Assembly: GCA_024704765.1 (NCBI GenBank)
Contig: JAKMXF010000033.1
Span: 620,001-684,000, forward strand
DNA from: Oopsacas minuta
Taxonomy: Eukaryota; Animalia; Porifera
DNA length: 64,000 nt
Reading direction: 5' to 3'
The notes beneath the pieces are model-generated. The model did not search any database. It was given only the letters and a program-made list of their open reading frames with translations, and had not been told where the DNA came from. Each line of letters opens with the position of its first letter. Position 1 is the stretch's first letter. The position numbers and the translations under genes are program-made. Below, in pieces: positions 1,976-42,900 of this stretch.

Positions 1976-2255
1976 TACTCGCCAATCATATTGAGGCAAA
2001 TATTCATCCTTACCTCTTCACTCTGGAATCTCTAGTTCACCCGATATAAGCACTACATTCTTAAAAGGGGTATAACAAATGAATATGTTAAATGATAATT
2101 ATTGCACATAAATAGGCTGTACGTACATACAACTACTATCAAAGTTGTAATAGACAGTTGCAAGCATGATGCATTGTTTCATAAGAATAATAAAAGGTCA
2201 AATCCATCAAGAGAAAGATAGAAAAGAGAATGTTTAAGATGTTCCAATGCTGAGG

Positions 2256-5200
2256 TTAGATTCTCACGCGAAATGTCCTAAATAAACAACCGGTTAATGT
2301 GGATAGCTACGTATACATAATTTATACTGAATTACAGGTACGTACTTGAAAAAGTCAGGGGATTTAGATATGATGTGTGCAAAATCATCCAAACAAAGTT
2401 TTTCTTCATTTGACATCAAACTCTCTTCAAAGATCTAAGTTATAGTAATAAATTGAATTTTGTCCCGAACATCGTAAGACATTTCACTTCATAATAATCC
2501 TGTGTATCTACCGTTTAAATTACCTTGTCAATGATAACTCTCTTCTCTTCATCACTAAGTCTGTTAGCTTTAAGTCCATCACCTGGTTGAGCTTGTCTAC
2601 CCTCTCCTGAAGCAGTTATAGGAGGGGTCTCCTATTGGTTAAGCAGTGCATTAATGTGTGTTATATTAATAGTTGAGAACAAATAAATCAACTTACCACG
2701 TCTTGTATTTCTGTGACATCAACAACTTGTAGATCCTAAAGTATTATTCAATAGATCTTACGGATATGTATTAATTGTTTAGTTACTATAGTAAATGGAT
2801 TACTACGTATCACCAGAGGGATTACGACAAGATGGAAGAGCCCCTAATGATATTCGCAAGTTACGAGCTAGCTTAGGTGTATTGCCTGCAGCAAATGGAT
2901 CCGCTTATATCGAACAAGGAAACACCAAAGTATTGTGTTCAGTATATGGCCCTCACGAGCCGAGAGGACAGAGAGGCAATGTAGAGAAAGTGATAGTTAA
3001 TTGTCAGCTGAGTATAGCACCATTTGCTATGGCATCCAGGAGGAGAAGACCGCTAGGAATAGGCCGTACTCAGGATATGGCTACTTCAATTGGAGATGCT
3101 CTAGAGGCTGCTATGTTAACCTCTGTATACCCCAGGTAACGTTTAATAATGTTTAATTGTATAGCTGTGTGTAGGGTAATAGTAACCAATAGTTTTCAAT
3201 ACATTTGTAGATCACAGATTGACATATACATTCAGGTCCTGCAAGCAGACGGGGGCATACAATGTGTCAGTATGAATGCTGCTACACTAGCTACCATAGA
3301 TGCAGGTATTCCTCTATCTGACTATGTATGTGCATGTACAGCAACCTATCTTGAGGATAAACCTCTTGTGGATATGAATCATACAGAAGAATTGGGCAGA
3401 GGCCCGGACATGAGTTTAGGATTACTCCCCAATAGCGGGAGGCTATCTATGTTACTAATGACCTCTAAACTACATAGAGATAATCTAGAGAAGGTAGTGG
3501 ACTGTGCTATGAAGGGTTGTAGAGATGTATACACGCTAATTAATGGGATTGTTAAGCAGAGAGCAGCAATAGATTAATAGTATTATTATTATTTGTATGA
3601 GATAACTATGCTTACGGGTTGCTGTTCAAGATCTGAGTTATATCCACATAGTTTGTCTAACAACTTCTCTAGATCTCTTCTACCGATAAAGTCATCTCCA
3701 TCAAAATCTAATGTTAGCAAGTGTATAATAGTGTCTCAAATTTATATTTCAAATTCAACAAGATAACTTACCGTAAACTTTGAAAGCGCATAGGATCTTA
3801 TCATCCTTTCGTGCCTATCATATAAATGTATAAATATCTACAGGTGGAAGTTTATATAATCCCTAATCATTTTTTTACAAACACCTACAGTGCAACCTCT
3901 ATAAATGGGGTCTCTATAAGCTATAAGCGGCCAATTTTGTACATATTCGTTCATTTCCATAGAAACGAATCTCTATAAGTGGGGAATTTGTAATAAAGTT
4001 CATTGAAATATCTATTTTCGTTCAAATTTGGAAAATATTCATATAAGCAGCCCCTATAATCATTTGAAATAATTTGATTTCTAGGAATAAAATTTTCTCA
4101 AAATTATTATTTTCAACAAATAAAGATATTATACAAATCAAAGATCATTGAAGAAACAGCCATTGGAGGAAGTGGCTAGAAAATTGACTATCTAAACTCT
4201 AATTAAATTAAGGACATTTACCATTGAAATTATATGTGGGGAATGAAGGCATATCCGAAATTTCGCCGTCCCGAGCTCCCCCACTTATAGAGATTCTACT
4301 GTATATGGTCGGTACATGTAAAACGCAGTTATTAAGAACCTTGTTTCAGCTTCATCGCATGCTCAGATCTTGTATATAGCAGGCACAAGTTTACCATTAA
4401 CAGTGGCTTAATTAAACGTTCGTAAATAATAAACTTACATTGTGGCTGAGTACAGATACCATGTCTAGAAAATCCTCAAAACTGAGAGCCCCATTGGTCT
4501 CTGAGAAGTATTTGCATAGTTCTCCTTTGAATGGATTCTCCTAAACAAATTAATAGGGTAGTAGTACGCATTAATTCAGTGGGAGAGTCACTATATGAAT
4601 TGTCCATATGAAACCATGTACTTAACAACCCATAATATCCTATTATAATGAGCTATAGAAAGCTGATATACGAGTAACAGGGACAACTAAAATTAGTTAC
4701 AAAACTCGGTAAGAGTAGAGATATAATTCAGATAAGATAACAGCTGATTACCCAGGGAGATGGCGTCGTGGGACGATGACAATTATGATCTTGACGTAGG
4801 ATTCGTCAACAAGTTAGACAAAGACTCAAAAATAGCAGCTCCTGATTCTAGTAAAGAAACTCAAAAGGAAAGTAAAAAACAGAAACAAAAGAATGAAATA
4901 GAAAGGAAGAGAGAGTTAGCTGAGGTAGAAGATTTTATGGGAGTAGATGATACTCCCGATGACGTCATAAACAGTAAACCTGTTACACAGCCTGTACCAG
5001 CACCGATAAATGCTAGAGCTCAGCTCAAAGCTAGTTTACGGGAAGCAAGCACTATAGATGATATTATGAGAATTTCATCAGAGCTAGCAGACATTATAAA
5101 CAGTGCTAGAGAGTCAGACCATTATGTAAAGTTACTAATCGAGCTAATTCGTAAATGCGCTAAAGATCTCCCCCCTGATGATATACGGCAGCTAGCAGCT

Positions 5201-8200
5201 AACCTGAATTCTCTCCATAAGTCTCAAGACAAGAAGAAGAAAGGAAAACGTCCCAACTTGAAGCTTGCTCCTGGGAAGAAAGGAGACGATAGAGCTGTAT
5301 CAAATGCTTACGATGAATTTAATTTGGATGATAACAGACAGGATGTAGATTCAGGAGATGAACAATACTATAAGAAGCATAATGCTAGTGGTGATGAGGA
5401 TAAATGGAACTTTTAGGATAATTATTTAGTAACATACAACAGTCATTCCTTTTCTCATGTTTCTGTGATTATTAATATGGTTTGTGCTCGTTACTAACTG
5501 GATATAATAAGCTGCTGTTTTACTAGTGGAAACCTTTATAATGTTCATTGAGTGGATGCTCTGCTTAGGACAGTAGTTTTCAGTCTTTTTTCACGGAAAA
5601 AATCGAATTTTTGAATATCCAAAAGTGTAAAAATGTCGAAATTTTGTGGGAATTGGCTGTAGAATGTAGTGCCGAAAATTTATTGCTCCGATTCATTATG
5701 ATGGCTATGAATAGGCCGTAATCGGATAATTTTAAGCCTTTTGAAAACGTTGGCTCATTATTGTGTTGGTAAGTAAGCATTCGATATATACAATTATTCA
5801 AATCTATTGCATAGGGCACTTGGGAGTTGGAAATAGCATATGCCTTAGTTCTGCATATACTCAATTACTTTACCCAATTAATTCCTGAATAACTAACCTT
5901 CAATTCTGGGAAATGTTTAGTAAATGCTTCCAGAGGCAGGTGTACAGCTACAAGAGCAGTGTTAGTATCATCAACAATATCTACCTGGAATTCTGGATTA
6001 GCTTGTTTGTAAGATTTGTGTATGTTTTCAAATTTCCTCCAAGCTCTAACAAATATTTTACCGTCGATAAATACTGTTATGTGATTTATGAACGGTTTGG
6101 CTGTTGTACATTAGATGCCGGTTATAAGTTATAAGAACATTATTGCATTGCTAGTCCCAAGGGGGTTCTTATAACCGGCATCCACTGTAACACAAATTTA
6201 AACAAAGAAGAATGTATGTTTTGTGGGTACTGGTTAACCTATAGAATTATAAGGAAATAGTACGAACCACGTTTGAATTAATTAATTAAATTTATTAAAA
6301 GTGGTAAGGTCAGGCAATGTAAGCAAAGTAGTAGGCAAATAGTTTTTATATGTGATAAGCTATGGGCCATACCAGCCTCACCGCTGCCCACGTAGTACAA
6401 TAACAGTATAAACACTAGCAACTAGCAAATTACTGTATATTAGCCAAAACGTAGCATTGTGTAATAGTAACAAATCAAATGATGTGGCAAAAATTGAATA
6501 AAAGAATTGATAAAAAACCTCAAAATGAAATAACCTAATTAATTAACAGTTTGAAGTAATTATTGAAGAAAACGCTATGAAATCTGCAGTAATTATTGTT
6601 AAGATCCAATTTCATGTAGCATACTTCTTTACATATGTTGTATAGATAGGAGCTTCGTGGTCGAGTTAATAATTCTATCATCATATTGCAAATCTGTTGA
6701 GATGGAAACATTTATATTGTGCAAACCGATACTGTTAGTAATTGTGATAGGTAAAGATGGCAATTAATTTATCAATAGTTATATTAGCCCTGAGTGTATA
6801 TTCAATTCAAACTATTAATGTTAATTTTACTGGTTTTGAAGAAGGAAATGATTATATATACAAATTGAATGGATTGAATACACAAGCTGATTTGACTTGT
6901 GCGGCTACAGCACATAATAACGAGAGTATATTCTTCCAGACAACATGGCGAGAGAATGGTAGTGACTTTATATCTGAAAGAGAGACGCTACATTTCAATC
7001 TAGTAGCTGAATATACAGGGGGAGATAAGCTGAGGAGATTCTATTGTATTGCTACTACTACTACTAATATATCTGTTGTGAGCAGGGAAATTAGTGTGCA
7101 AGTTCTAGGTAGGCATCTGAATGATTCTTTTATTATATTTATTATTCGAAATTCGTTCTTGCCCACGATACAGTCAACACCCCTTTATATCGAAGCTCAA
7201 GGGACTGCGATAATTAGTTAGATATAGCAGATGTTACTTTGACGTTGGGACCATATTTGTACAATTTAAGATTTCTATATAAGCGGGAATTCGGTACATC
7301 CGTGTTCGATATAACGGGGAGTTACTGTACTTATTTCTTTCTACAGATTATTCTACTATCTGGCTAAATTATAACAGTACTAATGAAGTGAGGACTAATA
7401 ATATAAACCAGACCCTACCAGTTCTGGTACCAGTCCTAACTAGAAACGTTACTCTCACATGTAACGCACAAGGTGCAGGCTGGAGATACACAAATAAAAC
7501 AACAAATAAACAAGTGCATATTGATGGCAGTGAGTTAAACATAGATGTTATCTCTCTCGATTGGATGGTAAGAATAATAGACTGTACTAGAAAATCTGGA
7601 ACGAATCCAGCATTCACTGCAACTAGCATTGTATTAATACCAACAGGTAAGATCACGTGAAAGGTAATTAATACTTTAAGTTTATTAACTTTTATTAATC
7701 AATTGTTAGAGAGTGGATTAGGACTGGAGAATAATGGCTCATTAAAAGCTATTGGAAACAATGAGAGATTGGTAATAACAAGGTACACGACTGTACTATG
7801 TGCTACAAGTGATACAGAGAATATTAATTGGTATTATAGAGACCAGGATGAAAATGGAATAGATGGTGTTATATTAGGAAATAATAGTATAAATGTAGAT
7901 CAGTCAGAGCTAGATACGAGAGGATTTGTCAAGCTAAGTATTAATTATCCTATCCCAGCTGATAGAACTGGTTACTACAGCTGTGTTACATATGAGAAGA
8001 TCTCTCATTCTCGTTCTAGGATTGTTACTCACATTGTAGAAATAGTAAATGGTAAGTATGTACTCTGTTTAGTTTTAAATAAATAAAGCATCATTTGCTA
8101 ACTACATATTTCAATAGAACTATATCAGAATACTAGAACTACAACCTTGTTCAATACAACTCTATCTATACAAATACCTATAAACATCACTACACAACCA

Positions 8201-11200
8201 ATAGCTTCAACCACAAAGCCCATCGCTCCAAATATCACCACAACACAACCAACAACTCTAAACACTACCACACAGATAATCACCCCAAATACCACCACAC
8301 TAACCAACGCTCCAAATACCACCACACAAACAACAATTCTAAATATAACCACACAGACCATCACTAAAAATATCACGACACAACCAACAACCCCAAATAC
8401 CACCACACAGACTATTACTCTAAATACAACCACACAGACGATCACCCCAAATACCACGACACAGACCATCGCTCCAAATACCACAACAAAGATAACCACC
8501 CAAAATACCTCCACACAGACAATCACCCCAAATACCACTCAAACAATCACTCCAAATACCACCACACAAACGATTAGTTTAAATACCACAACACAACCAA
8601 TAACTCTAAATACTACCACACAAACAATCACCTCAAATACTACCACAGTTACCATTACCCCAATCACCACAACGAAGACAACCACCCAAAATACAACCAC
8701 ACAGACGATCATCCCAAATACGGCTCAAACAATCACTCCAAATACGACTCAAACAATCACTCCAAATACGACTCAAACAATCATCCCAAATATAACCACA
8801 CAGACGATCATCCCAAATACGACTCAAACAATCACTCCAAATACCACACAAACAACCATCCCAAATACAACCACACAGACGCTCACCCCAAATACGACTC
8901 AAACAATCACTCCAAATACGACTCAAACAATCATCCCAAATATAACCACACAGACGATCATCCCAAATACGACTCAAACAATCACTCCAAATACCACACA
9001 AACAACCATCCCAAATACAACCACACAGACGCTCACCCCAAATACGACTCAAACAATCACTCCAAATACGACTCAAACAATCACCCAAAATACAACCAAA
9101 CAGACTATCACCCCAAATACCACTACTCCAAAACAAACAACTTCTACAACACCTCCAAACACCACAACAACTCAAGGAACAACTTTCTATACTATGATTA
9201 CTCCAACAACGGAAACAACTGCACCAAGACTCCCTGCACTAACAATTTTACAGCAAGCAATCATTGGTATCGCTATAGGATTAATCCTAATCTCCCTGTT
9301 CCTGTGTATCATCATAACATGCTTGTGTTGTCTAATAAAGAGGAAATCAAAGCCAAAGCCTTGGAAAGATGATCTACCAATAAGTCCCAGTGATGGTAAC
9401 AAGGTAACAGCTAAATACACTCCATTAATAGATACGCAGACTCAGGCAGCACTACAATCTACATCTATACAGAATATTGATACACTGAATTCCTCACCTA
9501 TCAAGAGTATTCAAGGAAATTATATGAAGATACCCATTCAAGAATCAGATGACGTCACAACTGAATTACAAACTCCAACCTTCACAACGGGAAGTGTAGA
9601 CTCACTTCTCTCAGAGAGTACTGTCTCATCCGCTAGCACAGCTCGGTATCAAGATAATCCTAATGGCAAATTAATAGAATTACAACATTACAAACAGCAT
9701 TTAGACCAACTATTGTTAGAGAATAGAATGGAGAGAGAATTTGATAGTCTGGGTAGACACGAAATAAGATACAGTTGCAATCAAGCTTCTCTCAAACAGA
9801 ATTTCAATAAGAACAAATACAAATCAATATTTCCATATGACAAATCAAGAGTGATAATCGTGGATACAGCCTCTACTGGAAGTGACTACATAAATGCCTC
9901 ACACATACCAGGATTCTACATACCCCAGCAATTTATCGCAGCTCAAGCACCAAAATCTAACACAATAAGTTGTTTCTGGAATATGGTATGGGAACAAGGA
10001 TTGAGGATAATAGTCTCACTAACTAATCTTGTAGAACTAGGTAAGATTAAATGTACTCAATACTGGCCTGATAAAGTAGGAGATAGTGATCAACATGGTG
10101 AAGTACATGTCTGTCTACAGAAAGAAGAGAGATACCCTAACTACATAGTTAGAGAGCTGTTAGTAAGTGGAGTGAGTAATAGAAAATTGAGAACAAGACA
10201 GTATCACTATACAGCATGGTCAAATCAAAATATTCCTCGGTTATACAATAATGTACTTTCATTCATTCAAACAGTTAAGAATAGAGAAAGGAAGATCAGT
10301 AGCACTTCTATTCTCGTACACTGTAATACAGGCGTAGGAAGAACTGGCATATTCATAGCCTTGTATAATATACAAGATGCAGTTGGCCAGGGTGTTCCTA
10401 TTAGCGTGTACAGAGTAGTTAATGAGATGAGAGAACACAGACCACACATGGTACAAACATTCTCCCAATACAAGTACATATACCTTGCTATACTAGAGAT
10501 TATAATGGGTTGTACCTCAATTATTGGTGAGGATTATAGAGACACATACAGTATGTATTTACAAGCAGAACAGCCTGGCTACCTCTCTGTATTCAAGCTA
10601 CAGTTCAAAGAGCTCAGTTACCAAACCGAAAAATGTTTCAATAATGAATGTACAGCAGCTTATTACACAGAGAATGTGAATAAGAATGTTGTTGATACAG
10701 TAGTACCATACGACTCTAATAGAGTAATACTATCCTCTACTACCTCGGGTTGTGAGTACATTAATGCTAGCTATATCAGTGACTACAAGCTAATAACAAC
10801 TCCGCTACCTAGACTAAATACGATACGAGAATACCTACAGTTAATCTGCCAGCTAGATGACCCTATTCTAGTAGTAATGTTAAGGAAACTGGAATATGAA
10901 GCAATGAAGAAAGACAGCTGTGATATACCGTATTATTGGGGGGAGGAGAGAGGAAGCAAAGAATTTGGAGTATATAAAGTAGAAACAGAAAGTATAATCA
11001 AATCTCCATTCTTCATACAATATAGCATGAAAGTATACAATGCTTATGAGAGTCAAGAACATAGATTCTGTCAATACATTACCTACTGCTGGGATGATGC
11101 AGATAGCTGTACAGATGCAGGAGCAGTAGTTACACTACTGGATCATGTAGCTATTAGCTTAACAGATAAACCTGATAGGACAGCTGTATTTAGCTGTAAC

Positions 11201-11974
11201 GATAGTATAGGGAAGTCTGGTGTAATGCTAGCTGTTTATCTAGCTGTTATGGATATTAAACAATCTGGAAATGTAGACTTATTTCAAACTGTCAAGAAAT
11301 TGAGATGTTCTAGAAAGAATATGGTCCCCACAATTGTAAGTTAAACATTATTGTACAATCAACTCCTGTTATATCGAACACGGATATATCGAAGTCTGAA
11401 ATTGTACAAATATGTCGCAAACAGTCAATATTACATATATTTATCGGTTATATCGAACGCCTCTTATATAGAAGTAATTATCGCTGGCCTTGAGCTTCGA
11501 TATAATGAGAATTGACTGTATTAGTAGATAACATTGTGACCAGGTCAATTTATGTAATTTCTCCCTATAGGAAGACTACATCTCTTGTCACTCTATCATA
11601 GATGAATATTTCAGAATGAATATGACGTATACATAGCACATAATAGTTTGTATATATCTATATTCTGTATATTTGTATTCAGAATCTTTTAATGTCTTTT
11701 TATGTATAATAACTATATAATTATAACTCACTGTTTTATTTCGTATTGACTGAATACTGTAAGAGGCTAAATAAAAAGGAAATATATTATTAGAGTAACG
11801 TATATTGTATATACAGGCAACTCAGGGTTTAATTGGAACACGATGGTCCCAGGTAGTTTCTCTCCCATAACCGAAGTTAACTGTATAATAGATATATATA
11901 TATCTATATATATCCATGTTTACCTCGTATACTTCCAGAAGTTCTGTAGGAATCTTTGATTGTTTCTGTCCCAT
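2256..11974 (-). CDS. CIB: Calcium- and integrin-binding (CIB) family EF-hand protein, 10 exons, 242 aa; host of three nested genes
   Basis: Exons 11924-11974, 11732-11766, 5898-6045, 4439-4540, 3772-3814, 3616-3707, 2697-2735, 2524-2631, 2346-2434, 2256-2277. All are GT-AG and phase-compatible, 729 nt with no internal stop: MGQKQSKIPTELLEVYEPLTVFSQYEIKQAWRKF...PELKENPFK...LSFEDFLDMVSVLS...AFKVYDFDGDDFIGRRDL...SKSPDFFKTFRVRI*. The paralog cannot be resolved. Confidence 0.9.
2795..3577 (+). CDS. EXOSC4: Exosome complex component RRP41, 2 exons, nested in CIB intron 6
   Basis: RNase PH motifs GLRQDGR, GSAYIEQGNTKV and YPR|SQIDIYIQVLQADGG across intron 3136-3210 (GT..AG). Confidence 0.93.
3886..4303. 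mobile_element. Non-autonomous Tc1/pogo(Tigger)-type element, about 420 bp, in CIB intron 4
   Basis: Imperfect TIRs TACAGTGCAACCTCTATAA ... TTATAGAGATTCTACTGTA with TA flanks. Confidence 0.7.
4760..5416 (+). CDS. EIF3J: Translation initiation factor eIF3 subunit J-like, intronless, nested in CIB intron 3
   Basis: Acidic N-terminus MASWDDDNYD, helical core (YVKLLIELIRKCAKDLPPDDIRQLAANL) and basic KKKKGKRPNLKL tail. Confidence 0.7.
   Translation: MASWDDDNYDLDVGFVNKLDKDSKIAAPDSSKETQKESKKQKQKNEIERKRELAEVEDFMGVDDTPDDVINSKPVTQPVPAPINARAQLKASLREASTIDDIMRISSELADIINSARESDHYVKLLIELIRKCAKDLPPDDIRQLAANLNSLHKSQDKKKKGKRPNLKLAPGKKGDDRAVSNAYDEFNLDDNRQDVDSGDEQYYKKHNASGDEDKWNF
6107..6189. mobile_element. Tiny MITE
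   Basis: TACATTAGATGCCGGTTATAAG ... CTTATAACCGGCATCCACTGTA inverted ends. Confidence 0.7.
6757..11636 (+). CDS. Receptor-type protein tyrosine phosphatase-like (signal peptide, Ig-like domains, mucin stalk, TM, tandem PTP domains), 6 exons, nested in CIB intron 2
   Basis: Exons 6757-7108, 7347-7646, 7710-8051, 8118-11335 and 11571-11636 are phase-compatible GT-AG. Motifs KNKYKSIFPYD, DYINAS, KCTQYWP, VHCNTGVGRTG; second domain EYINAS and FSCNDSIGKSG. Confidence 0.88.
7169..7329. mobile_element. MITE family A (TACAGTCAACTCCCG-type TIR)
   Basis: TIRs plus the shared core CTCAAGGGAC.GCGATAATT; in PTP intron 1. Confidence 0.8.
8200..9130 (+). repeat. Coding minisatellite for the Thr-rich mucin stalk (PNTT/TQTI units) with a 150-bp internal duplication
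   Basis: 24/27-bp units; sequence at 8761 recurs near-perfectly at 8911 (offset 150). Confidence 0.9.
11354..11520. mobile_element. MITE family A
   Basis: TACAATCAACTCCTGTTATATCG ... CGATATAATGAGAATTGACTGTA; in the last PTP intron. Confidence 0.8.
11812..11885. mobile_element. Tiny TACAG...CTGTA MITE-like insert in CIB intron 1
   Basis: TA-flanked CAG/CTG ends, more GC-rich than its surroundings. Confidence 0.4.
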
Positions 11975-12763
11975 TTAATCTATAATAATCTATTATTAGT
12001 GAAGAATAGCAATAATTGAGTATTAATGAATTCTCTTAAATATCTCAGTGTTTTGTTCTAAATTAGTAAATTTGATATTTATCAAATCATTAGCTTAATT
12101 AATTGCCAAAAGAGTAGAGATGAAATAATTAAACCTTTTAGACACACAACACTGTATAAGAAGGCTTATCAATTAATAAAGTCAGTGGACATTATCCCGT
12201 ATAACTGTGCAATAAGTATGATATATAATCTAGTTGTTTACTAAACTGTCCTCACGTGTCCGTTCTACTTGCTATTGTCCAATGCGATGCACGACATATG
12301 GCGCGCCGCCACTTGAGAAGCCCTGCAGTTGAAAATGACTTTTATCCATGTTCACAAAATAGCTCAATAATCCAATTCTATCCCCAAAAAGATTGTCAGT
12401 TACACAGTCTCTGATTAATATTCTATATAATTTATCCAGTCCCCCTGTAGGACTTATATCCTGTGATTGCTTGATAAATACATTTACAGTACCACATGTA
12501 TTCCAAACTAAATATCTCATCTCACATAATGTAATATGTTAGTAACTAAATAACAGATTTATGATTCAATAATATACAAATTCCCTAACGAAAGAACAAA
12601 TAGAGACAGTGTTTCTAGTCCCAGGGGAGATATATCTAGTTAATGTACAACACATAGACAGAACATACAGTAAGTAAGAGAGTTAGCTCAGTAATTTGAC
12701 GTAGTATTAGATGTACAAGGACAGTGGGGAGTTGTAGCATATCAAGAGAGACGGTAAGTTTAA

Positions 12764-15700
12764 TTAAACAAGTTTTGCTATCTCAGTAGCAACACTCTGT
12801 GATAGAATCTGCTCTGAGGATTTTACGCTAACAGAAATCCCACTTTGTAAACTATCCTTCACTAGCAAACATACATGATGTTGTCCTATCGTAACACCAT
12901 ATAAGGAAGCACCGGTTCCTACACGCTCAATAACAGACACGTGTATACCTGTTGATATTAATGTTACTGCATTATTAAAATCTGTTGATCTTATGAAGGG
13001 TAGTTGTGAAGTCACAGCTTCGCTTAATTCTCCACTACCTAACACTTCCATGAACTCGTTTTTATTGAAGTTTGTAGTGTGAATAAACGCAGAAACAGGA
13101 AATGAGATACGTACATCTAGCTTCTCACTGGTACTACCTAATGCACTGTTTATCATGTAGGTTAGTGTGCCTTTCAATTTCTGTGGTACCAATACATTAT
13201 TAACATTGAAAGTTATTTGAGTCTCCTGGCTATTACCAGGAGTTAGTTGGAATGGGAGTAGTATTGCGTCACGAGCTCCTACCCCTGGTGGTCTGACAGC
13301 CTGTACATTTAGAGAATCCACTATATTGAATTCCAGTGTTGTTAATGTAGAAGGCGATTTACTACAGAATGTTAAGTGTAGGACTACCTGTTGGTTGTAC
13401 ATATGATTCTGTTTTAGTTCGAATAGAATACGTAGATTTGTATCTGCTACTAATTCCTCTTGTAGATTTTTCTTAGTATTCAGGAATCCTAGTTCTAGAA
13501 TATCATTAGTAGGATCTATTAATGGTACTGTAGTAGAGGCTACTGGAGGAGGTGATTCTATGACTTGCTCAGGTCGATGTTTCTCTCGTTTCTTATCTCT
13601 ATCTCTCCTATGTTTATGCTTTTTCTTGTGTGTAGAGTCTTCTTCCAGAGTAACAATTGGCTGGGTACCATTCTCTGAGGGAAGGAGAGAAGCTCCTATA
13701 GATGGTCCGTTAGTGTCTGGAGGAGGAGATGTACTCGCGTCAGGTGCTAGCCAGAAATCTAAGTCATCCTGTTGAATACTATCTACTACTTTACTTGGAG
13801 ATACATGAGTTGGTTCTTGCTTAACTTTAGATTGTTCAGTTTGATTCCTATCAACATCCTCTCCATCCCCTATTCCTATCAAATCAGGTCCATCTACTTC
13901 TTTCTTGTGATGTCTCCTCTTAGATTTCCTCTCTTCTCTCTCTGCAGCTGTCTCCTTCTTCCTCTCCCCTCTGTCCCTCTTCTTATCTTCCTTATCTTCA
14001 TCCGCTTCTTTATCTCTTCTGTGTCGTTTCTTATCCTTTTTCCTCTTTCTCTCTTCCTGATGATCAGCTGATACCTCAGCTGGTTTCTCTACTACACTAC
14101 CCACTTCTCTATGTCTTCTAACTGGTATCATCTCTTCATCCCTTAGAGGAGCATCTAGATTAATATTCAGTCTGTCGTGTGGGTTGTTAGTTGGTATAGA
14201 ACTTTTAGTGTCTCCATCAGATAAGTTAGCTCCCTCTGGCATCTCTCCTAAAGCTACATTCACTCTATGAACAGGCTGTACTTCCTCCTCAGAGCTCTCT
14301 CCTTGCTTCTTCTTATGTTTCCGACTTGATTTTCCTATAAACACACAATATTACTACAGTACTTAATGGACGTATGAGATACTCAAGTTGGATTAGTCAG
14401 TACATTGCAACCTAGATTACTTTAGGCATTTGCAGTGGAATCACTTGATATTGACGCTAATACCTAGTTATAAAACTGTGGTATTTATATCACTCACCCT
14501 TCTTAGTAGACTTCTTAACCTTCTCCACAGGAACAGCAGTACTATTATCCATGAGTATAGGAATACTCAAATTAATAGGTTTATTAACTAGATCAATAGT
14601 ACTAGTAGTCCCAATAGAATTAGCCTCTACATCAGGTCCTATAATACTACTTCCTGCCTTGAGATAATGCGGGTTGTGAGCTAATGACAGTTCTCTCTGT
14701 TGCTTCTTACTCATTATTTCCTCTTCAGTAGCTTGATAGGAGTCTGGAGATGCTGTATAGGTTGTATCAGTGTATGCTTTATCTGATCCAAATAGTATTT
14801 TATCCCATGGCATATCTTCTGGCTCTTTTTCAATTGTAGGTGGGTTAATCCAAGCATCGAGATCAAGTCCATCTGGAATTGGTACCTGTATGGGAATTCT
14901 ATTGAAATACAAATCGGGAAGTGGTTCCCAAACGAGAGTCCATAGAGCCCCAAGGAAGAAAATAGGGAATCCACAGGATGGCAGGTGGTTTAAAATTGGT
15001 ATAGGGGTATTTGGGTGAAATTTGTTAGGAATCACTGGTGTAGATATATAATTATGATAATAGCTATTCTGTGGGATCTTACCTTCTTCTGGGCAGTTGG
15101 AGCCACAGGGTTGAGTTCTCCTTCTATCAGGGCTTTCAGCTCTCGTAGAACAGATCCTCCCTTCCCCTCTACCTTTGCCATATACCGTACTATCTGTAGG
15201 ACTAAGCTAGCTCTCTCCTGAACCTCAAGCTCCCCACTCTGTAAACTGGATTCTAAGTTCTCAATTAAGAAAGTCTTAGAATCATTTCTTAATTCATCTC
15301 CAGCTGGTCCTGACGGAGCAACCTCTAGTACACGTACGTATAGTTTCAATGAGTTGTGTATCAGAGTAGCCTAGCAATATATTCATATAACACATACTGC
15401 TAGAAACAATGTAATGAATAGTGGATTCTTGTTAAGCGAACATAGATATCAGATAAGACATACAGTAGAACTCGGATAGGAAAAGATAAATATTAGTGCG
15501 TACTAATTGAAGTACGTCTTATCCGAATATTTCCTATACAAGTAATACAAGAATTGATAATCCGTTTTGGAGAAATTACGTATTAACTTCCCTATTGTAC
15601 TTACCTGTACATATGCAGGAGCAGCGTTGAGTCTAGGCTGTTTATAACAACACATTAACGTCTTACCAGGATCATCTAAGTATACAGCATACTCTCCACA

Positions 15701-20451: not shown

Positions 20452-22629
<2,178 letters not shown>

Positions 22630-28500: not shown

Positions 28501-31500
28501 CTCATTAGCTTTTCCAACCAACAGATCTCCCACATAAATTGTAAGTATCGGTGAATGTGTTATGTAGTTGGGAATAGGGATACCATCTTTTCTATACCAG
28601 TTAACTAATGGAATAGGATTTCCTGATGCGGAACAATTGTAGTTATGAGCATATTCTGAAGCATTGGAACCTGCAAAGTACATATCTGTCTCAGGCTCGA
28701 GGATTTCTGGGATTGTCTCTACAAATTCAAATGAGCTATAAAACCGAATTACACAAGTTTATGCACATGCTCTTACCTTCTCTCAAATAGAAACTAGTAG
28801 ATACTTCAGGTCCATATCCTCTCCTATTATAGGGAATTACTGTAACAGTAAAGTTAACAGAGTGCCAGAGATACAGCAACAATATGAATTCCTGATCAGT
28901 TTGATTTCTCCATGTAAAGTTATCAATCAGTTGAGGAATACTTGTGTTAGCTGGATCAGTATAGTGAGTAGTTATGTTGTAGTGTAGTATTTCCCCGTTA
29001 CGATCACTGATAGGAACAGGCTGCCATGTAATGAGAACTGAATACTGACTAGCTTCAGCCCAGCTCAAATTCTTTACAGGAGCACTGGGAGCTAAAGTAA
29101 CATAATTTAAACAAGGATTCTACACAATTTCGAATTTAATATACACAGTAGAACCTCACTAACGGACGATCAAAAATTGTTCGCTTTATCCTGAGTTCGT
29201 ATTAACCAGGGTAATACCAATTTAATAACCATTGTAGAGACCTGATTTTGCAAACTTCGTCTTATTATTCGTTGTATTAATGAGGTTACGCAGTAGTATG
29301 AAGAGGCTTACCTGCATCTTCAGTGGATACGACAATATAATCAGGTTTACTCCTTATTCCAGATGCATTAAGAAATACTTGTATCGTGTAGTTAGTATCT
29401 TCTTCCAGGTTTTCTAGAGTAGCTTCTTGCATGAATGTATTATTTATATATTCAAAAGATAGTTCATGAATAGAAGTATCTAGTAGAGTACCCTGATAGG
29501 TCAGGATATAGTTTTTAGGTATACCGTCTATGTCCTCATCATATGGTGATTCCCACTTTACATGTATACTGGTAGCTGTGACATTGTTATAGCCCAGTTG
29601 AAGTGGTTGAAGAGATCCTTAATATAGTTTTATATTAATTATCGATTTAACCGAATACAGCGATTTAACTTGAATTTTGAAAGTCAAAGAAACAAATATA
29701 CATGCAGTCGAAACCGTTTTTTTCTTGCCATTTCTTTGCAGGACATTATTGTAAAAAAAACTGATGGATAATCTATGAAATTCCCACATTATTTGCAATC
29801 TTAGAATGGAATTGTAATACCTGAATGTAGAGTTTTGGCAGTAGTGTTAGCAAAGGGCCCTCTACCTGCTTCATTATTTACAGCTAATCTTATTTCGTAA
29901 TCAGGACCTCCGTTAGTCAATCCTTGTAATATAAAATAGAAGTTGTTATCTCCATCAGTTACTGGTATTGTCGTCTCGATGTTCTTTGGTCCATTATCCT
30001 TCTTGCTTGAATAGAAAAGAGTAAAATTTGTTAATTTTCCATTTATCTCTAGCTTGCCAGGTAGCTGCCATGTGATCAGTGAAATTGAAACAGAGAGAGC
30101 TGTGGCATTTAGAGATCGGGGAGTTCCAATTGGAGCTAAAATGATTAGATCGATATTATTAGTTTGATTTTACAAATATGTAAGTCTCAAGCAATAACAT
30201 TTTGTCAATTCTGAATCTAACTATACGAGTCTAATTTGCTTTTATAATATATGAAAGCGTAATGGTTTGCTTGTAGAACTATACATTAACAATCTACGTT
30301 GCTGAATGATGATTAGAAGAGCCAATTTTAAACTTATCGTAACAGTAAATAATAACAGCAGGTACCAGTTTGTAGAGTTGTAAATTCCTCTAAAGATTCT
30401 CCATTCTTCCCTTTCAGCTGAGTGTAAGAAGTAACATTAAGTGTATAAGTAATATACTCCTCTAGTCCATTAATTGTGTAGCTCATAGTGTTAGCATCAA
30501 GTGTAACGTTCTTTTCTGTATCTATATCTCTTGAAGAGTATATCAACAGGAAGTGAGTTATATTATCACCAGTGCTGGTGGAAGGTGCAGACCATGATAC
30601 ACTAAGAGATGTGCTATTTGCCGATGATATTATCAAATTTAGAGATTGTAGAATATCTGTAGAATAGTGTATGGTAGAAAATAGGAATCTTTTGCAAATA
30701 CAGTAGCAAGGTGAAAATTAACATTTAAACATTGAATGCTTACCCTGTTGCGGAGTTGTAAATGAATGAGTTATCGTAACAGGGTGTTCTAATGCACTAC
30801 TTGATACACTGATGGAGTAGTGGGTGTTAGGAGATAGCTTATCAGAGATGTAGTAAGCAGTTGTATATGTGACGTCACTAGCTATAACTACGCCCAAATT
30901 ATCAGTTACTATGACATTGTAGCTTGTAGAGAGCTGGTATATATCGGAGAAAGGTAGCCATGATATACATGCAGATTCCTGGCTAATGAATTGTGTTGAT
31001 ATTTCTACACAAATAATATAATATTAAAATCAAGTCCAATTATTGATATGTATTACCTTGAGCAATTTCTTTATCCAATCTTACAAGTAGAGTAGCTTGA
31101 GGACTGGTACTTACTTTCGTGTCAGCTGACAGAGAGAAGAAATACGAAACATTCATCTTCAATTCACTTATAACGGTGCTAAATGTATATGAATCCAATA
31201 CATTGACTACTGTAGGATCAGACCCCATTCTAGTTGTGTAAGATTCGATACTATAATAGTTCAGTGTATACTGCGTTATAGGACTATGTCTATATTGTAA
31301 GGGGATTTCTTTCCAGTTTACCTCAATGGTAGATGGCGCTATAACACTGTAGGAGAGTCCAGGCGGTTGTATAAGAGCAGCTATAAAGTGTATTATAATT
31401 GTGTGGGATATATCAAACGCCCGCTTATATGGAAGTCTGGAATTGTACAAATATGGTCACAAACTGTCAAAGTAACATAAATTTATCGGTTATATCGAAG

Positions 31501-33243
31501 TAATTATCGCGGGCCCTTGAGCTTCGATATAACGAGAGTTGACTGATAATCAATTGCTTATTAATTGCAAACTGTATAATCCTTACCTTCAACACTACAT
31601 ATATATTGAAGATATTCATTATTGCAATATCTATGTTCCCATTCTTTGTTATAAGCCATGGAAACACATTCCATAGTAGTCTGAGGCTCTTGTAACTGGT
31701 TAATAAATTCTACTTCACTCGCATCTTCCCATCGCCATCTCAGCTCTGTCATCCGAAAGACAAGTCCAATCCAAAAGTTACCAGTAGAGAAGTCCAAGAT
31801 ATTATGTAGTAGTTCAACTTCCCTCATGGATTTTATTGATGCAAGATAACTGTTTCTAGCTATACAGTCATTACTCGCTTCATGCTGGCGAACTGCACTG
31901 TTAAATACTTCAAACCGCCTTCCATCAATCATCAAGCTGTCTTGATCATACAAAACTATCAAAACAAAATAATTTGGTAATTAATAAATATTGTAAAATA
32001 TAGGTAGAGACTTGCTCTTAATGAATATAAAGTAAACAAATAGTTGAAAATTCTTACATTAATTTTCAAGGAAAATATATTACCTCTCTTGCTGCATACG
32101 AAAGGACGAGATTCTGTACAGGGAGACAACTCTAGTGATGTTCCTCCCTGAGTTTGGATATATCCGCACAATGTGTTACTACTGCTGGTTTTTGGTACCA
32201 GAGGTCCTAGTATACTCATGTCTGCCCATGTGAAGTCACCGCCAGATTTTAAATTGGTCAGAGATGTCCATGTCCATGCATCTGGGTCATCAAATAATAC
32301 TGATACAGTATTAAGTTCTTGTTGAGAAGATAATGATACTAGCTCACCACCCCAAGCTGTACAACTGGAGTTTGCATCGGTCCATTGTTCGTGTCGGCTG
32401 AAGAATTGATAACAAACATTCTTCCAAACAAGATTACAAGATCCGTAACATGAAAAGTCATCACAACTGTTGCAACCTGTTATGGAGTAAATGTTATGAC
32501 ATATTTGGTCTTGCTGCAAATTGGTTCAACAGTGTTCATGTTCAAATATTGCGAAATGATGAAATTGGTCTGAGCTTATGTATAAACTTATACGAATATA
32601 ATACTGATTAATATTACGTTCAAGTAGCAAAATTATTATTACAGTCAACATCCGCTAACTCGAAATCCCGTTAAGGTCCCAATTTCCCCTGCGACACTTT
32701 TTCAAATGATTAAGAGCTGAAAATGTAACTGCTTATTCAGTTTTTTGTGATCTCTTCAAAAATGCAATAAAACACATTCATATCAAAATTATTCAAAAGT
32801 ATATTGTTAGTTAATATGCTGTACAGTTAACCTGTAACTCGAAACCTAAAATCTGTTCGAAAAATCGAATGTTCGAGTTAAATGGGCGCGATAAGTACTA
32901 AAAGTACATCGAAGGGAAGTGAATATTCATTTAAGATAACGAATGTTCGAGTTAACCGGCATTCGAGATAGCGAACAGTTTTTATAAAAACCGAATAGTG
33001 AAAGGAAGAGAAACGAAATTTTCATTCGAATTAACGAAAGGTCGAATTAAGTAGAGTCCATCAGTTAACTCGAAGATTCCCTATCTCGACAGATTTTGAT
33101 TTTCCCTTACGTTCGAGTTACCAGATGTTGAATGTATTTGATTTAATAATGAAAAATAAATTACGTAATTAACCTAGCATACCTTGATAAGTTAAAAACA
33201 AAACAAATAAGTTAAAAAAGCAGACAATTTTTGTTGTCACCAT
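25531..33243 (-). CDS. Adhesion GPCR: signal peptide, 2 C-type lectin domains, about 6 FN3, Ig, GAIN/GPS, 7TM, PDZ-type tail (ETRL)
   Basis: Exon 1 33183-33243 MVTTKIVCFFNLFVLFLTYQ. CTL motifs CYQFFSRHEQWTDANSSC...WTWTSL and FWIGL...YIC. FN3 exons (SLSVSWSAP, SVLITWQP). Ig YNCSASGNPIPLVNW. GPS CLFFD...WSGEG...CGTMHLSSFSVL. 7TM motifs WTAVMAW and IFGWSYP...WLIWTFLGP. Confidence 0.88.
26530..26680. mobile_element. MITE in a GPCR intron
   Basis: TACAGTGGAACTTCATTAA ... TATTAACGAAGTTCTAGTA; related to 56526-56668. Confidence 0.6.
29145..29297. mobile_element. Degenerate MITE in a GPCR intron
   Basis: CACAGTAGAACCTCACTAA ... TTAATGAGGTTACGCAGTA. Confidence 0.45.
31404..31545. mobile_element. MITE family A, left-truncated
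   Basis: Shares the core and right TIR (GCTTCGATATAACGAGAGTTGACTG). Confidence 0.7.
32640..33136. mobile_element. About 500-bp non-autonomous Tc1/pogo-type element in GPCR intron 1
   Basis: TACAGTCAACATCCGCTAACTCGAA ... TTCGAGTTACCAGATGTTGAATGTA; internal AACTCGAA/TTCGAGTT repeats. Confidence 0.7.
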
Positions 33244-39978: not shown

Positions 39979-42900
39979 ATGTCTATCCTCTTTCTACACG
40001 AATTCGTAAAAATATCTTTTAGTATACTTTATTCTCTGTGAGTAATGGCAATTATAGCATTTTGACAATTATTATTATTCTTTATTGTTTTATTATATTA
40101 ATGTACAGCCCATGTCAAGATTATACCGGTTCATAAGCCTGCTTCCCAGGCCTTCCCAACAGTTGTCCCTTCGCCTGCCTACGTCACGCGCCTTCTCTGG
40201 CATCATTCCTAAGGTAGCTGGAATCAACAAGAGTAAACAGGTGGTGGAGGATTATGACAAATATGTAGCACAAAACTATACTCCTCTGAAAGACGTAGTG
40301 ATAGCTAGAGGAGAAGGTGTGTATGTATATGATATAGAGGGAAGACGTTATTATGATTTTTTGACTGGATACAGTGCTATGAACCAAGGACATCGACATC
40401 CTAAGATCCTAGCTGCTCTCAAAGAACAGGCTGATAGACTCACACTAACAGGTCGGTGTTATTACAATGACATGTTGGGGAAATATGCTAAATACGCTAC
40501 AGAGCTGCTAGGCTATGACAGACTACTCCCTATGAATGGAGGAGTGGAGGCTTCAGAGAGCTCTATCAAGATGTCTAGAAGATGGGGCTATGAGGTAAGC
40601 AATCTTATAATGCTTATACATATTTTGGGAAATGTCACACTACAGTATTTCACACCTTATTATCCGAGTCAATCGATCAACAGAATACACGAATCGGATA
40701 ATTGATTGGCTGAGTTGGATGATTGAATGAGAAATACACTGTAGACTGTGCAATCTTGTATCCAATGAAAGATTATAATACAGTTCAGTAGCTGGGTTCG
40801 ATAAATCAGACTCAATGGACCGCGATAATTACTCCGATATAATGATAAAATTTCTGTTGCTTTGAAGGTTTGGGACCATATTTGTACAATTACAGACTTC
40901 GATATAACTTTGTTCTATATAATGGGAGTTGACCGTATGTATCTAGTATAAATACTACACAACTAGCTAAATAAGTTTTATTTTTCTCTCCTCTCAGGTG
41001 AAAGGAGTACCAGACAATGAAGCTAAAGTTATTCTCTGTCGCGGCAACTTCTGGGGAAGGAGCATTGCTGCTGCTAGCTCTAGTACTGACCCTTCCTGTT
41101 TCATGGGGTATGGCCCATTCGTTCCCGGATTTGAACTTATACCATTTAACGATATTCCAGCCCTAGAGCATGCTCTCAAGGACCAGCATGTTGTAGCATT
41201 CATGGTAGAGCCGATACAAGGAGAAGCTGGTATTATTGTACCGGACAAGGGATATCTGAGTAAAGCTAGAGAGCTGTGTACTAAGAATAATGTACTGCTT
41301 ATCTGTGATGAAATACAGTGTGGATTAGGAAGGTAAGATTGTATTACTTATACAAGGGAATGGTAAAAATTTTAGATCATTTGGGAAATCATTTCTAATT
41401 CTGTAATAAATCTGGATATTTTGGGTAGATTCATAGGGTGATGAGTGTACACGAGAGGAGCCTCTCTATCTCTATTTATGTATGTCTGTTAATCCTATAG
41501 ATCTGGTAAGATGCTAGCTAGCGAGTATGAATCAGTACGTCCAGACATATTAGTGCTAGGTAAAGCTCTATCTGGTGGATTTATGCCTATATCAGCAGTA
41601 CTAGCAGATGACCAGTATATGTCTATGATGAAGTCTGGCACACACGGTTCTACATTCGGAGGTAACCCTCTTGCATCAGCACTAGCCATCGCTTCTCTTA
41701 GAGCTATCGTAGAAGGAGGTATGTGTGAAAACGCGTACAAGATGGGTGAGATATTCCGCAAAGAAGCAGCTACGTTTAGGCGCGATATAATCAGAGATGT
41801 AAGAGGAATGGGACTATTCAATGCTATTGAATTAAACCCCAATTGTGGAGTAAGTGCTAGTACAGTTAATGAGAAGCTACGTGATCATGGTATACTATCT
41901 AAATCTACTCATGAGTATACGTTCAGGATGGCACCAGCTCTTACGATTAACGAGGAACAGCTGATGGATGCTCTATCTCTCATGAAGAAAGCATTAGAAG
42001 AATGTTAAGCTAGTTTAATACAGACTAATGATTCCCATTACTACTCGCTACAGATTATCAGATTATTTCTACTCTTTATTATTCCGTCCTTATTCTAATT
42101 ATTTCATATATTTGTATTGAAATACATTAATCTCTGTTTATTGTCAATAGTATTCCGAATCTAGTCTAGTCTCTATTTAGCAGATACTCAATTTGGACGG
42201 TTACGCCAGAGAGCGAGATTTTTTAAGAGGTGGGAATGTCAAGTCCAACGGCTCCCAACCTGAGGTCTAGGGACCATTGGTGGTCCACGGTAGACAGCAA
42301 GGGGTCAAGAGGATCTGAAAATTTATATTGCTGTATGGAATGGCTCAACAGATTGTGTTATAATTGGTATATGAGACCCATGAGCCAACAAAGTTGGGAA
42401 AGCTGTGTCACCCCAGTCAATAAACATTTATGGTAAAATTAACTGCACCGAATTGAGTGGTTCCTGAAAATACAACATACACCTATAAAGAATGTTACTA
42501 TTTATAGTAACTTCATTTAATTTAAAATCCATTATTAATATTTCATCATTACTAAAACAGTTAGCTAATGTTTCATTTAACAAGATTACAGAACTCTCCA
42601 CGCTGGGAACCTAATCTTAAATCTCTTACTGCTTTAACAGCTGATAATATATTCTACATCAGCTCTGTAACAGGAGCTACAGACTATCTAGCTGTATCTC
42701 TCAGTACTCACTCAAAGTAAGATCTCAAACATGGTTTCCCTATACCAGCGCTTTCTAACCTTTATCACTCGTGGATCATGGATCCCCTATATTAATTTTA
42801 ACACATTCTGTGGCTCCCTCCCATAGACAAATTTTGAGATCCTGTTGACCCCTCTGTCGTCAGTGGACCACCAAGAGGTCCATGGACCCTAGGCTGGGAA

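Follow-up and report, generated by a model that had tools for sequence, protein, structure and literature searches.

Organization of the locus

A minus-strand gene of the CIB family in the glass sponge Oopsacas minuta is very probably spliced across three complete genes that lie on the opposite strand inside its introns, which makes the locus a dense but ordinary instance of nested genes in the compact genome of a glass sponge. The window (the whole stretch of DNA analysed here, 64,000 nucleotides of contig JAKMXF010000033.1) contains the coding span of the host, which measures 9.7 kb from ATG to stop on the minus strand. Three CIB introns (2, 3 and 6) each enclose, by their coordinates, one whole plus-strand guest CDS, at 6757-11636, 4760-5416 and 2795-3577, respectively. 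An earlier reading of the same DNA from sequence alone (the sequence-only reading) had proposed a CIB gene hosting three antisense genes, and this arrangement was recovered here. The guests combined take up about 65% of the CIB ATG-to-stop span (arithmetic from coordinates). What is gained is a corrected gene model, a ten-exon CIB gene plus three nested genes; it adds one further documented case of a phenomenon that is very common in glass sponges and brings no conceptual change.

Host gene

The ten minus-strand exons (11974..2256) were joined by script on the window sequence and gave a single open frame of 729 nt (stop included) encoding 242 aa, with AG...GT at every internal exon border. The proposal that ten exons yield an uninterrupted CIB protein was thus borne out. 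The features of the host gene, all on the minus strand, are as follows.

2256..11974, minus strand: CIB-family EF-hand host gene, 10 coding exons (frame and splice sites; orthologous frames in relatives L001, L003, L004/L005 and L006)
11924-11974, minus strand: exon 1, 51 nt, encodes MGQKQSK..., an N-myristoylation-type start (Gly2 and Ser6; frame script)
11732-11766, minus strand: exon 2, 35 nt (frame; an RNA-like contig joint departs at 11732)
6046-11731, minus strand: intron 2, 5,686 nt, encloses the gene of the receptor PTP (contig joint in run X4)
5898-6045, minus strand: exon 3, 148 nt (frame script)
5897-4541, minus strand: intron 3, holds eIF3j (frame)
4439-4540, minus strand: exon 4, 102 nt, more specific to the family than any other piece (frame; phmmer versus PDB)
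3772-3814, minus strand: exon 5, 43 nt (frame; peptide unchanged in all relatives)
3616-3707, minus strand: exon 6, 92 nt, carries the EF-hand 3 loop DFDGDDFIGRRD (frame; relatives' loci)
3615-2736, minus strand: intron 6, 880 nt, holds EXOSC4/RRP41 (frame)
2697-2735, minus strand: exon 7, 39 nt, small and weakly conserved (frame and relatives; 39 nt in L001-L005, 42 nt in L006)
2524-2631, minus strand: exon 8, 108 nt (frame; 93-102 nt in relatives, among which the 5' part varies)
2346-2434, minus strand: exon 9, 89 nt, EF-hand 4 region with degenerate loop (30 of 30 residues identical in all relatives)
2256-2277, minus strand: exon 10, 22 nt including the stop, ..TFRVRI* (frame; relatives)

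Intact ten-exon CIB frames of 237-240 aa, with 80-89% identity to the CIB protein of the window, were found in four assemblies of related glass sponges (L001, L003, L004/L005, which are two contigs of one assembly, and L006). The exon sizes in these four assemblies are 51, 35, 148, 102, 43, 89-92, 39-42, 93-108, 89 and 22 nt. In L001, L003 and L004/L005 exon 1 ends at a GT donor and its peptide showed 100% identity; the peptide of exon 2 was unchanged in the same loci and in L006. Exon 3 peptides showed 80-84% identity across relatives, with AG/GT borders (GC in L003), and exon 4 occurs as a single copy in the genome. The C-terminus encoded by exon 10 is identical in L006, where it lies 955 nt from exon 9.

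Family assignment of the host protein

When exon 4 was compared with PDB using phmmer, matches were obtained to CALM-1 (E 1.1e-6), CIB1 (1e-5), CIB2 (1.7e-5) and CIB3 (3e-4); the eight best chains were all CIB1/2/3 or C. elegans CALM-1, and the next family, calcineurin B, followed at E 0.1. Exon 9 aligned to CIB1 residues 156-183 (E 0.016), with CIB-family chains only among the matches listed. Exons 3, 6 and 8, searched singly against PDB, gave no matches, and the protein search with exon 3 returned only same-exon ORF fragments from relatives and repeat artefacts such as P0015. Exons 4 and 9 are colinear with residues 67-99 and 156-183 of CIB1 and with residues 81-113 and 166-193 of C. elegans CALM-1. 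By these two exons the predicted host protein is closest to the CIB family and not to other EF-hand families, an assignment at the level of the family and to no one subfamily.

The N-terminus MGQKQS of the sponge protein has Gly2, which is kept in relatives, and represents a predicted myristoylation start; a Gly2 start (N-terminal myristoylation) has been described for CIB1-3 (PMC11900603). The exon/intron structure of CIB genes is absent from that review of the CIB family (PMC11900603). The sponge protein is longer (242 aa) than the members of the CIB family (187-201 aa for CIB1-4 and CALM-1), and it has about 35-40 extra residues between EF3 and EF4, which exon 7 encodes together with the last part of exon 6 and the first part of exon 8.

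As read from the sequence, the EF-hand 3 loop of the sponge CIB retains acidic ligands, with Asp at position 12, as in CIB1. Aligned to SDIDRDGTINLS of CIB1, the EF-hand 4 loop SLMSNEEKLCLD has Leu and Ser in place of the ligands of loop positions 1 and 3 and is without the usual Gly at position 6. A CIB protein would be expected to have both C-terminal EF-hands, EF3 and EF4, in working order; the EF4 loop of the sponge CIB is without acidic ligands, and the protein appears to be a family member with one predicted metal site. The degenerate EF-hand 4 of the single glass-sponge CIB sits in a segment that is identical across all seven loci compared. The host protein would be a myristoylated Ca2+/Mg2+ sensor in which only EF-hand 3 is intact. 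TMC channels are known partners of CIB2/3 and CALM-1. Genes with TMC domains were found in the same genome, and the host CIB might possibly partner the channels that they encode.

Guest genes

The guests and their exons, all on the plus strand, are listed below.

6757-11636, plus strand: guest 1, receptor-type tyrosine phosphatase (PTP), 1,425 aa, 5 coding exons (RNA-like contig joints, frame, Pfam)
6757-7108, 7347-7646, 7710-8051, 8118-11335, 11571-11636, plus strand: coding exons of the receptor PTP (RNA contigs and frame)
4760-5416, plus strand: guest 2, eIF3j, single exon, 218 aa (PF08597)
2795-3577, plus strand: guest 3, EXOSC4/RRP41, 235 aa, two exons, 2795-3135 and 3211-3577 (Pfam, PDB, orthologues)

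The translation of the PTP gene reads as a hydrophobic N-terminus/signal peptide, an extracellular part from three exons, a mucin-like repeat region rich in Thr, a TM segment and the domains D1 and D2. D1 has the CX5R motif (HCNTGVGR), and in D2 a K replaces the R (SCNDSIGK). Pfam gave a tandem Y_phosphatase in 2 stretches (E 2e-99), and among solved structures D1-D2 constructs of PTPRA, PTPRS, PTPRE and LAR are the closest relatives. Guest 1 is thus by its predicted domains a receptor-type, tandem-domain PTP, with a predicted signal peptide and a predicted TM segment. Six exons had been proposed for it from the sequence; the RNA contigs and the frame instead give five coding exons. The exon borders are preserved in relatives, with 52-65% identity in the cytoplasmic part.

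Guest 2 matched the eIF3j profile PF08597 with 47.3 bits (cut-off 28.9), spanning profile positions 92-247 of 250, and showed 49-71% identity to six glass-sponge relatives. The eIF3j of Vazella pourtalesii (P0003) is the complete ORF of a Trinity transcript (EukProt), and that of another relative (P0007) is located on a 1-kb Logan contig (L007).

Guest 3 occupies 783 of the 880 nt (89%) of intron 6, its splice choice being set by frame and profile continuity. It has RNase_PH and RNase_PH_C domains (Pfam), gave RRP41 as the best match in PDB (E 7.5e-27; MTR3 4e-11) and showed 50-58% identity to named RRP41 orthologues; its second exon has 72-82% identity among glass sponges. Judged by these similarities, guest 3 is the predicted counterpart of RRP41, the closest to it among the exosome ring subunits.

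The guests are independent, live genes (EXOSC4 probably so), as indicated by the plus-strand splicing of PTP, the Trinity ORF of Vazella eIF3j and three open, conserved frames. No canonical AATAAA or ATTAAA was found after the EXOSC4 or the eIF3j stop inside the respective intron. One AATAAA is present at 11770 after PTP; the equivalent acceptor sequences in relatives are without AATAAA. A scan for bacterial-type promoters and terminators upstream of the CIB host gave fewer matches than shuffles and is irrelevant to an animal genome.

Evidence from sequencing runs

Four public runs (X1-X4) of one sample were used; X4 is RNA-like, its run type not being on record, and the contigs carry no strand information. 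The scope of the contig-joint analysis was 6,000 bases, skipping a repeat at 11884-11974. One X4 contig joins 6045 to 11732 and skips 5686 nt, with CT..AC on the plus strand (= GT..AG on the minus strand); its shorter side measures 21 letters, which is under the 31-letter bridge rule. The junction 11732>6045, which the sequence-only reading had named as a check on its model, is therefore seen exactly where expected, in this one contig. Four further X4 joints (7106>7345, 7644>7708, 8050>8117 and 11335>11571) lie in PTP, all GT..AG on the plus strand. Splicing of the host across its guests is thus indicated for intron 2 by one X4 contig joint, and it is predicted for introns 3 and 6 (junctions 5898>4540 and 3616>2735) from the open frame and from the conserved exons and splice sites of relatives; the junction of exons 1 and 2 is likewise predicted from frame and conservation.

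None of the X4 splice joints, of CIB intron 2 or of PTP, occurred in runs X1-X3, which behave as DNA. Contigs of X1-X3, which are DNA-like, cover the stretch between its repeats with no break at gene borders, none of them spanning it whole. Contig depths were not taken as expression levels; depth cannot rank genes.

Conservation of the nest

Synteny in related species had been suggested as a way to date the arrangement. The gene order is kept in six related glass-sponge assemblies, Vazella pourtalesii among them (L001-L006, L008-L010), with the layout shared by at least five, and the CIB exons of the relatives interleave with the guests as they do in the window. Introns were measured in five loci, and in four of them the guest-bearing ones, of 5.1-6.4 kb, 1.4-1.9 kb and 0.9-1.2 kb, were longer than every other. 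The sequence-only reading had likened the exon sizes 51, 35, 89 and 22 nt to those of vertebrate CIB1 and suggested ancestral introns that were filled with genes later; the present comparison establishes a narrower point, that the nest was in place before the sampled glass sponges diverged. Nesting of EXOSC4 was looked for in a sea anemone (cnidarian) and a starfish (echinoderm) and was absent in both.

Under the preferred explanation, the CIB gene would be transcribed over 9.7 kb of the minus strand and its ten small exons joined across the guest-bearing introns. Each guest would be transcribed independently from its own promoter within the host intron, and the arrangement has probably been retained as a side effect of the compaction of the genome, without a regulatory role.

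Alternative explanations

The nest might instead be a functional unit of obligatory host-guest sense-antisense pairs, in which UTRs or promoters of the guests overlap host exons and mutual tuning keeps the layout under selection; if true, CIB and its guests would be conserved pairs regulating one another. The spacing is tight enough to suggest this: in the window, 39 nt separate the EXOSC4 stop from host exon 6 (34-91 nt in relatives, by arithmetic from ORF and exon coordinates) and 60 nt separate its ATG from exon 7, and the distance of the PTP stop to exon 2 is 95 nt there and about 100 nt in L001. On such a reading the promoters or 3' ends of guests must overlap host exons, because in all glass sponges sampled EXOSC4 nearly fills intron 6 and the PTP stop is so close to exon 2 (about 100 nt); the missing AATAAA/ATTAAA after the EXOSC4 and eIF3j stops within their introns and the retention of the layout in every relative sampled point the same way. 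However, the three guests have unrelated functions, the overlap of mature RNAs is only inferred, and microsynteny in a compact genome yields conserved nests without any coupling, extensive microsynteny and many conserved nests having been reported (PMC10282587). Coupling of this kind is considered improbable.

Still less credence is given to the idea that exons 1 and 2 are foreign to the CIB gene, i.e., that the transcript has its start in between the guests, with the upstream pieces forming a chance frame or belonging to another gene. At 51 and 35 nt both exons are too short for searches of their own. The idea is contradicted by the contig joint exactly at 11732>6045 with its minus-strand GT..AG, and by the complete identity of both peptides in L001, L003 and L004/L005 (for exon 2 also in L006), where AG/GT is kept while the flanks diverge; in addition, the MGQKQSK start fits the Gly2 start of CIB1-3 (PMC11900603). 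The least probable alternative, to the point of being negligible, is that the interleaving arose as an artefact of assembly or that the guests are decaying relics. The same order was found in six other assemblies from different samples and the DNA-like contigs of X1-X3 are unbroken at gene borders, which speaks against an artefact; decay is at odds with guest frames that are open and conserved (49-71% for eIF3j, 72-82% for the second exon of EXOSC4, 52-65% for the cytoplasmic part of PTP) and with the PTP splicing present in RNA-like contigs. Ordinary nesting in a compact genome remains the preferred explanation.

Comparison with known nested genes

For the glass sponge Aphrocallistes vastus, 2,432 nested genes (12.4%) have been reported; many nests are common to A. 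vastus and O. minuta, and glassin is nested in both species (PMC10282587). The suggestion of the sequence-only reading that nesting is a layout principle here agrees with how very common such nests are in glass sponges (PMC10282587). Only 83 nested genes are attributed to the v1 annotation of O. minuta, and low counts are blamed by the authors on the annotation method (PMC10282587); because of this, the v1 annotation may show the CIB locus in fragments. The CIB nest comes from the same animal class as the nests of A. vastus and represents the same phenomenon, intronic genes in a small compact genome, but that paper contains no description of the CIB host with its three guests (PMC10282587). 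With nests already known as common in glass sponges, the locus documents one example well and introduces no new phenomenon.

Among vertebrates, a host with several guests is NF1, which carries OMG, EVI2A and EVI2B on the opposite strand. The two loci are alike in having several whole opposite-strand genes within the introns of a spliced host. Unlike NF1, the sponge locus has its guests in three different introns, and the sponge host measures only 9.7 kb, with 729 coding bases.

Structure of the host gene and its guests

The minus strand of positions 2200-12050 was read and candidate exons were joined by script. The ten exons of the CIB-family EF-hand gene total 729 nt with the stop codon and give an open frame of 242 residues, and every intron in the window starts with GT and ends with AG (script), which bears out the coordinates, junctions and exon sizes of the sequence-only reading.

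CIB host gene, exons
11974-11924, minus strand, exon 1, 51 nt
11766-11732, minus strand, exon 2, 35 nt
6045-5898, minus strand, exon 3, 148 nt
4540-4439, minus strand, exon 4, 102 nt
3814-3772, minus strand, exon 5, 43 nt
3707-3616, minus strand, exon 6, 92 nt
2735-2697, minus strand, exon 7, 39 nt
2631-2524, minus strand, exon 8, 108 nt
2434-2346, minus strand, exon 9, 89 nt
2277-2256, minus strand, exon 10, 22 nt

Introns 1-9 measure 157, 5686, 1357, 624, 64, 880, 65, 89 and 68 nt in the window. As had been proposed, introns 2, 3 and 6 hold a receptor-type tyrosine phosphatase (PTP), eIF3j and EXOSC4/RRP41, all on the opposite (plus) strand (Pfam, solved-structure matches and open frames). 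Intron 4 (3815-4438), 52-110 nt long in relatives versus 624 nt here, is mostly taken up by a dispersed repeat some 420 nt long (mainly about 3880-4306). A first look at the genome gave at least 145 candidates for this repeat, whose copies share 68-86% identity.

The guest in intron 3, eIF3j, is a single plus-strand exon of 218 aa (PF08597, 47 bits). EXOSC4/RRP41 (235 aa) has a coding span covering 783 of the 880 nt of intron 6. For PTP, GT..AG joints were found on contigs of the public sequencing run X4 at 7106>7345, 7644>7708, 8050>8117 and 11335>11571; with the cuts shifted to GT/AG, the exons join into one frame open for 1,425 aa. PTP thus has five coding exons instead of the six claimed previously.

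Guest genes with several exons
6757-7108, 7347-7646, 7710-8051, 8118-11335, 11571-11636, plus strand, PTP coding exons (intron 2)
2795-3135, 3211-3577, plus strand, EXOSC4/RRP41 exons (intron 6)

The N-terminus of PTP is hydrophobic; the protein further has three extracellular exons, a region of Thr-rich repeats, a TM segment and the domains D1 and D2, with two Y_phosphatase stretches (Pfam). D1 carries HCNTGVGR, and D2 has K where the catalytic-loop R is expected; among solved structures, D1-D2 pairs from PTPRA, PTPRS, PTPRE and LAR are closest. In the mucin-like repeat region of the ectodomain (about 8150-9290; TTQTITPNT-type units) the GC skew is -0.5, and long antisense ORFs occur that are spurious. 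Antisense ORFs at this position in relatives range from 197 aa (contig L001) to 1,696 aa (contig L002), a spread suggesting that the length of the region differs greatly between relatives. Inside PTP introns 1 and 4 (7168-7300 and 11355-11521) lies a dispersed repeat of roughly 170 nt. Further copies lie near 21633-21819, 31406-31545, 40811-40932, 43522-43723 and 63342-63431, and a first look at the genome gave at least 992 candidates. In the window these two introns are 238 nt (intron 1) and 235 nt (intron 4) long; in L001 and L005 the last PTP intron is about 56-59 nt. The repeat appears to be a small non-autonomous element that entered short introns already present.

Evidence for splicing

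Four public runs of one sample contain the stretch. Joints on read contigs were examined over 5975-11974, the repeat at 11884-11974 (exon 1>2 region) being left out. Over 5975-11974, runs X1-X3 were DNA-like, with no splice-type joints. In X4 a joint 6045->11732, which skips 5,686 nt and has minus-strand GT..AG ends (plus strand CT..AC), corresponds exactly to predicted CIB intron 2. The junction 11732>6045, named as a check in the sequence-only reading, is therefore present in X4, on one strandless contig with 21 letters on the shorter side, from a run whose type is not on record. A 1-kb Logan contig (L007) from the species of L006 is colinear with the genome and starts 28 nt inside CIB exon 4; this start, with two letters common to both paths, would be the k-1 overlap expected where spliced and unspliced paths branch.

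Features of the CIB protein

CIB identity was searched per exon against solved structures, the joined protein being used in local scripts only. The eight best solved chains for exon 4 (34 aa) were C. elegans CALM-1 (E 1.1e-6), CIB1, CIB2 and CIB3, and the next match was calcineurin B (E 0.1). Exon 9 (29 aa) aligned to CIB1 residues 156-183, with only CIB-family chains among the matches listed. Exons 3, 6 and 8, searched singly against solved structures, gave no match. The assignment to CIB stands on exons 4 and 9, which match this family foremost.

The protein begins MGQKQS, sharing the Gly2 N-terminus described for CIB1-3 (PMC11900603). Its EF3 loop DFDGDDFIGRRD keeps the acidic ligands, whereas the EF4 loop SLMSNEEKLCLD, aligned to SDIDRDGTINLS of CIB1, has lost them. 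Compared with CIB1, the sponge protein presumably has about 35-40 additional residues between EF3 and EF4; exon 7, together with the adjoining ends of exons 6 and 8, codes for this stretch. Despite the loss of metal ligands from the EF4 loop, all seven loci compared, the most distant included, have the same sequence in a 30-residue segment of exon 9 (2346-2434). Exon 7 and the start of exon 8, which adjoin the conserved exon 9 region, vary freely among loci.

CIB exon 4 occurs as one copy in the genome. TMC channels are known partners of CIB2/3 and CALM-1, and at least four TMC-domain loci were found; the sponge CIB might likewise be a TMC partner.

TMC-domain loci (PF07810, above cut-off) in the genome containing the window (G000)
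C33:753172-753528, locus L015, about 69 kb past the window end
C11:810242-810619, TMC-domain locus
C325:180453-180797, TMC-domain locus
C330:111896-112264, TMC-domain locus

Conservation in related glass sponges

The synteny comparison proposed in the sequence-only reading revealed the same order and interleaving in contigs of related glass sponges, among them Vazella pourtalesii (EukProt name). All relatives' contigs share the order 314-318 aa gene (minus), RNase_PH (plus), eIF3j (plus), PTP (plus) and AP3D1 (minus); Vazella contigs stop inside PTP, and L002 and L008-L010 stop before CIB exons 1-2. For the eIF3j ORF, six relatives were found (49-71% identity). Alignments of the window exons (local tblastn and nucleotide) put the CIB exons on the minus strand and show them alternating with the guests just as in the window; the relatives' CIB is 80-89% identical to that of the window. 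Intact joined frames measure 240 (L001), 237 (L003) and 239 aa (L004, L005 and L006 each), with exons of 51, 35, 148, 102, 43, 89-92, 39-42, 93-102, 89 and 22 nt. Relatives' CIB borders are AG/GT with one exception, a GC donor of intron 3 in L003 (about 11674); this GC-AG intron is GT-AG in all other relatives.

In four of five measured loci, the guest-bearing introns are longer than any other intron. The exception is L006, from the most distant relative, where intron 9 (6644-7598; 955 nt, versus 62-69 nt elsewhere) slightly exceeds guest-bearing intron 6 (938 nt). In assembly ERZ25072740 the whole locus is present in two near-identical copies on separate contigs (L004 and L005); either haplotypes or a recent duplication could explain them. 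Both flanks are conserved in all relatives: just past the CIB stop lies a minus-strand ORF at 828-1802 (314-324 aa, no Pfam family), and upstream of CIB is the last exon of AP3D1 (12764-14344, minus strand like CIB), which ends 790 nt before the CIB start codon.

Comparison with other animals and known nested genes

In Actinia tenebrosa and Asterias rubens the annotated EXOSC4 is not within another gene and has unrelated neighbours, and no CIB exons were found within 10 kb of it; this part of the nest is therefore not general to animals. The observation of a CIB nest with three guests is confirmed. Its earlier interpretation, in which a putative match of the 51, 35, 89 and 22 nt exons to vertebrate CIB1 would point to ancestral introns that received genes later, is partly supported. 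The genome paper of Aphrocallistes vastus reported 2,432 nested genes (12.4%), described such genes as abundant in glass-sponge genomes, with many of these conserved, and ascribed the 83 counted in O. minuta to annotation method (PMC10282587). The CIB nest is a new, well-supported instance of nesting already known in glass sponges.
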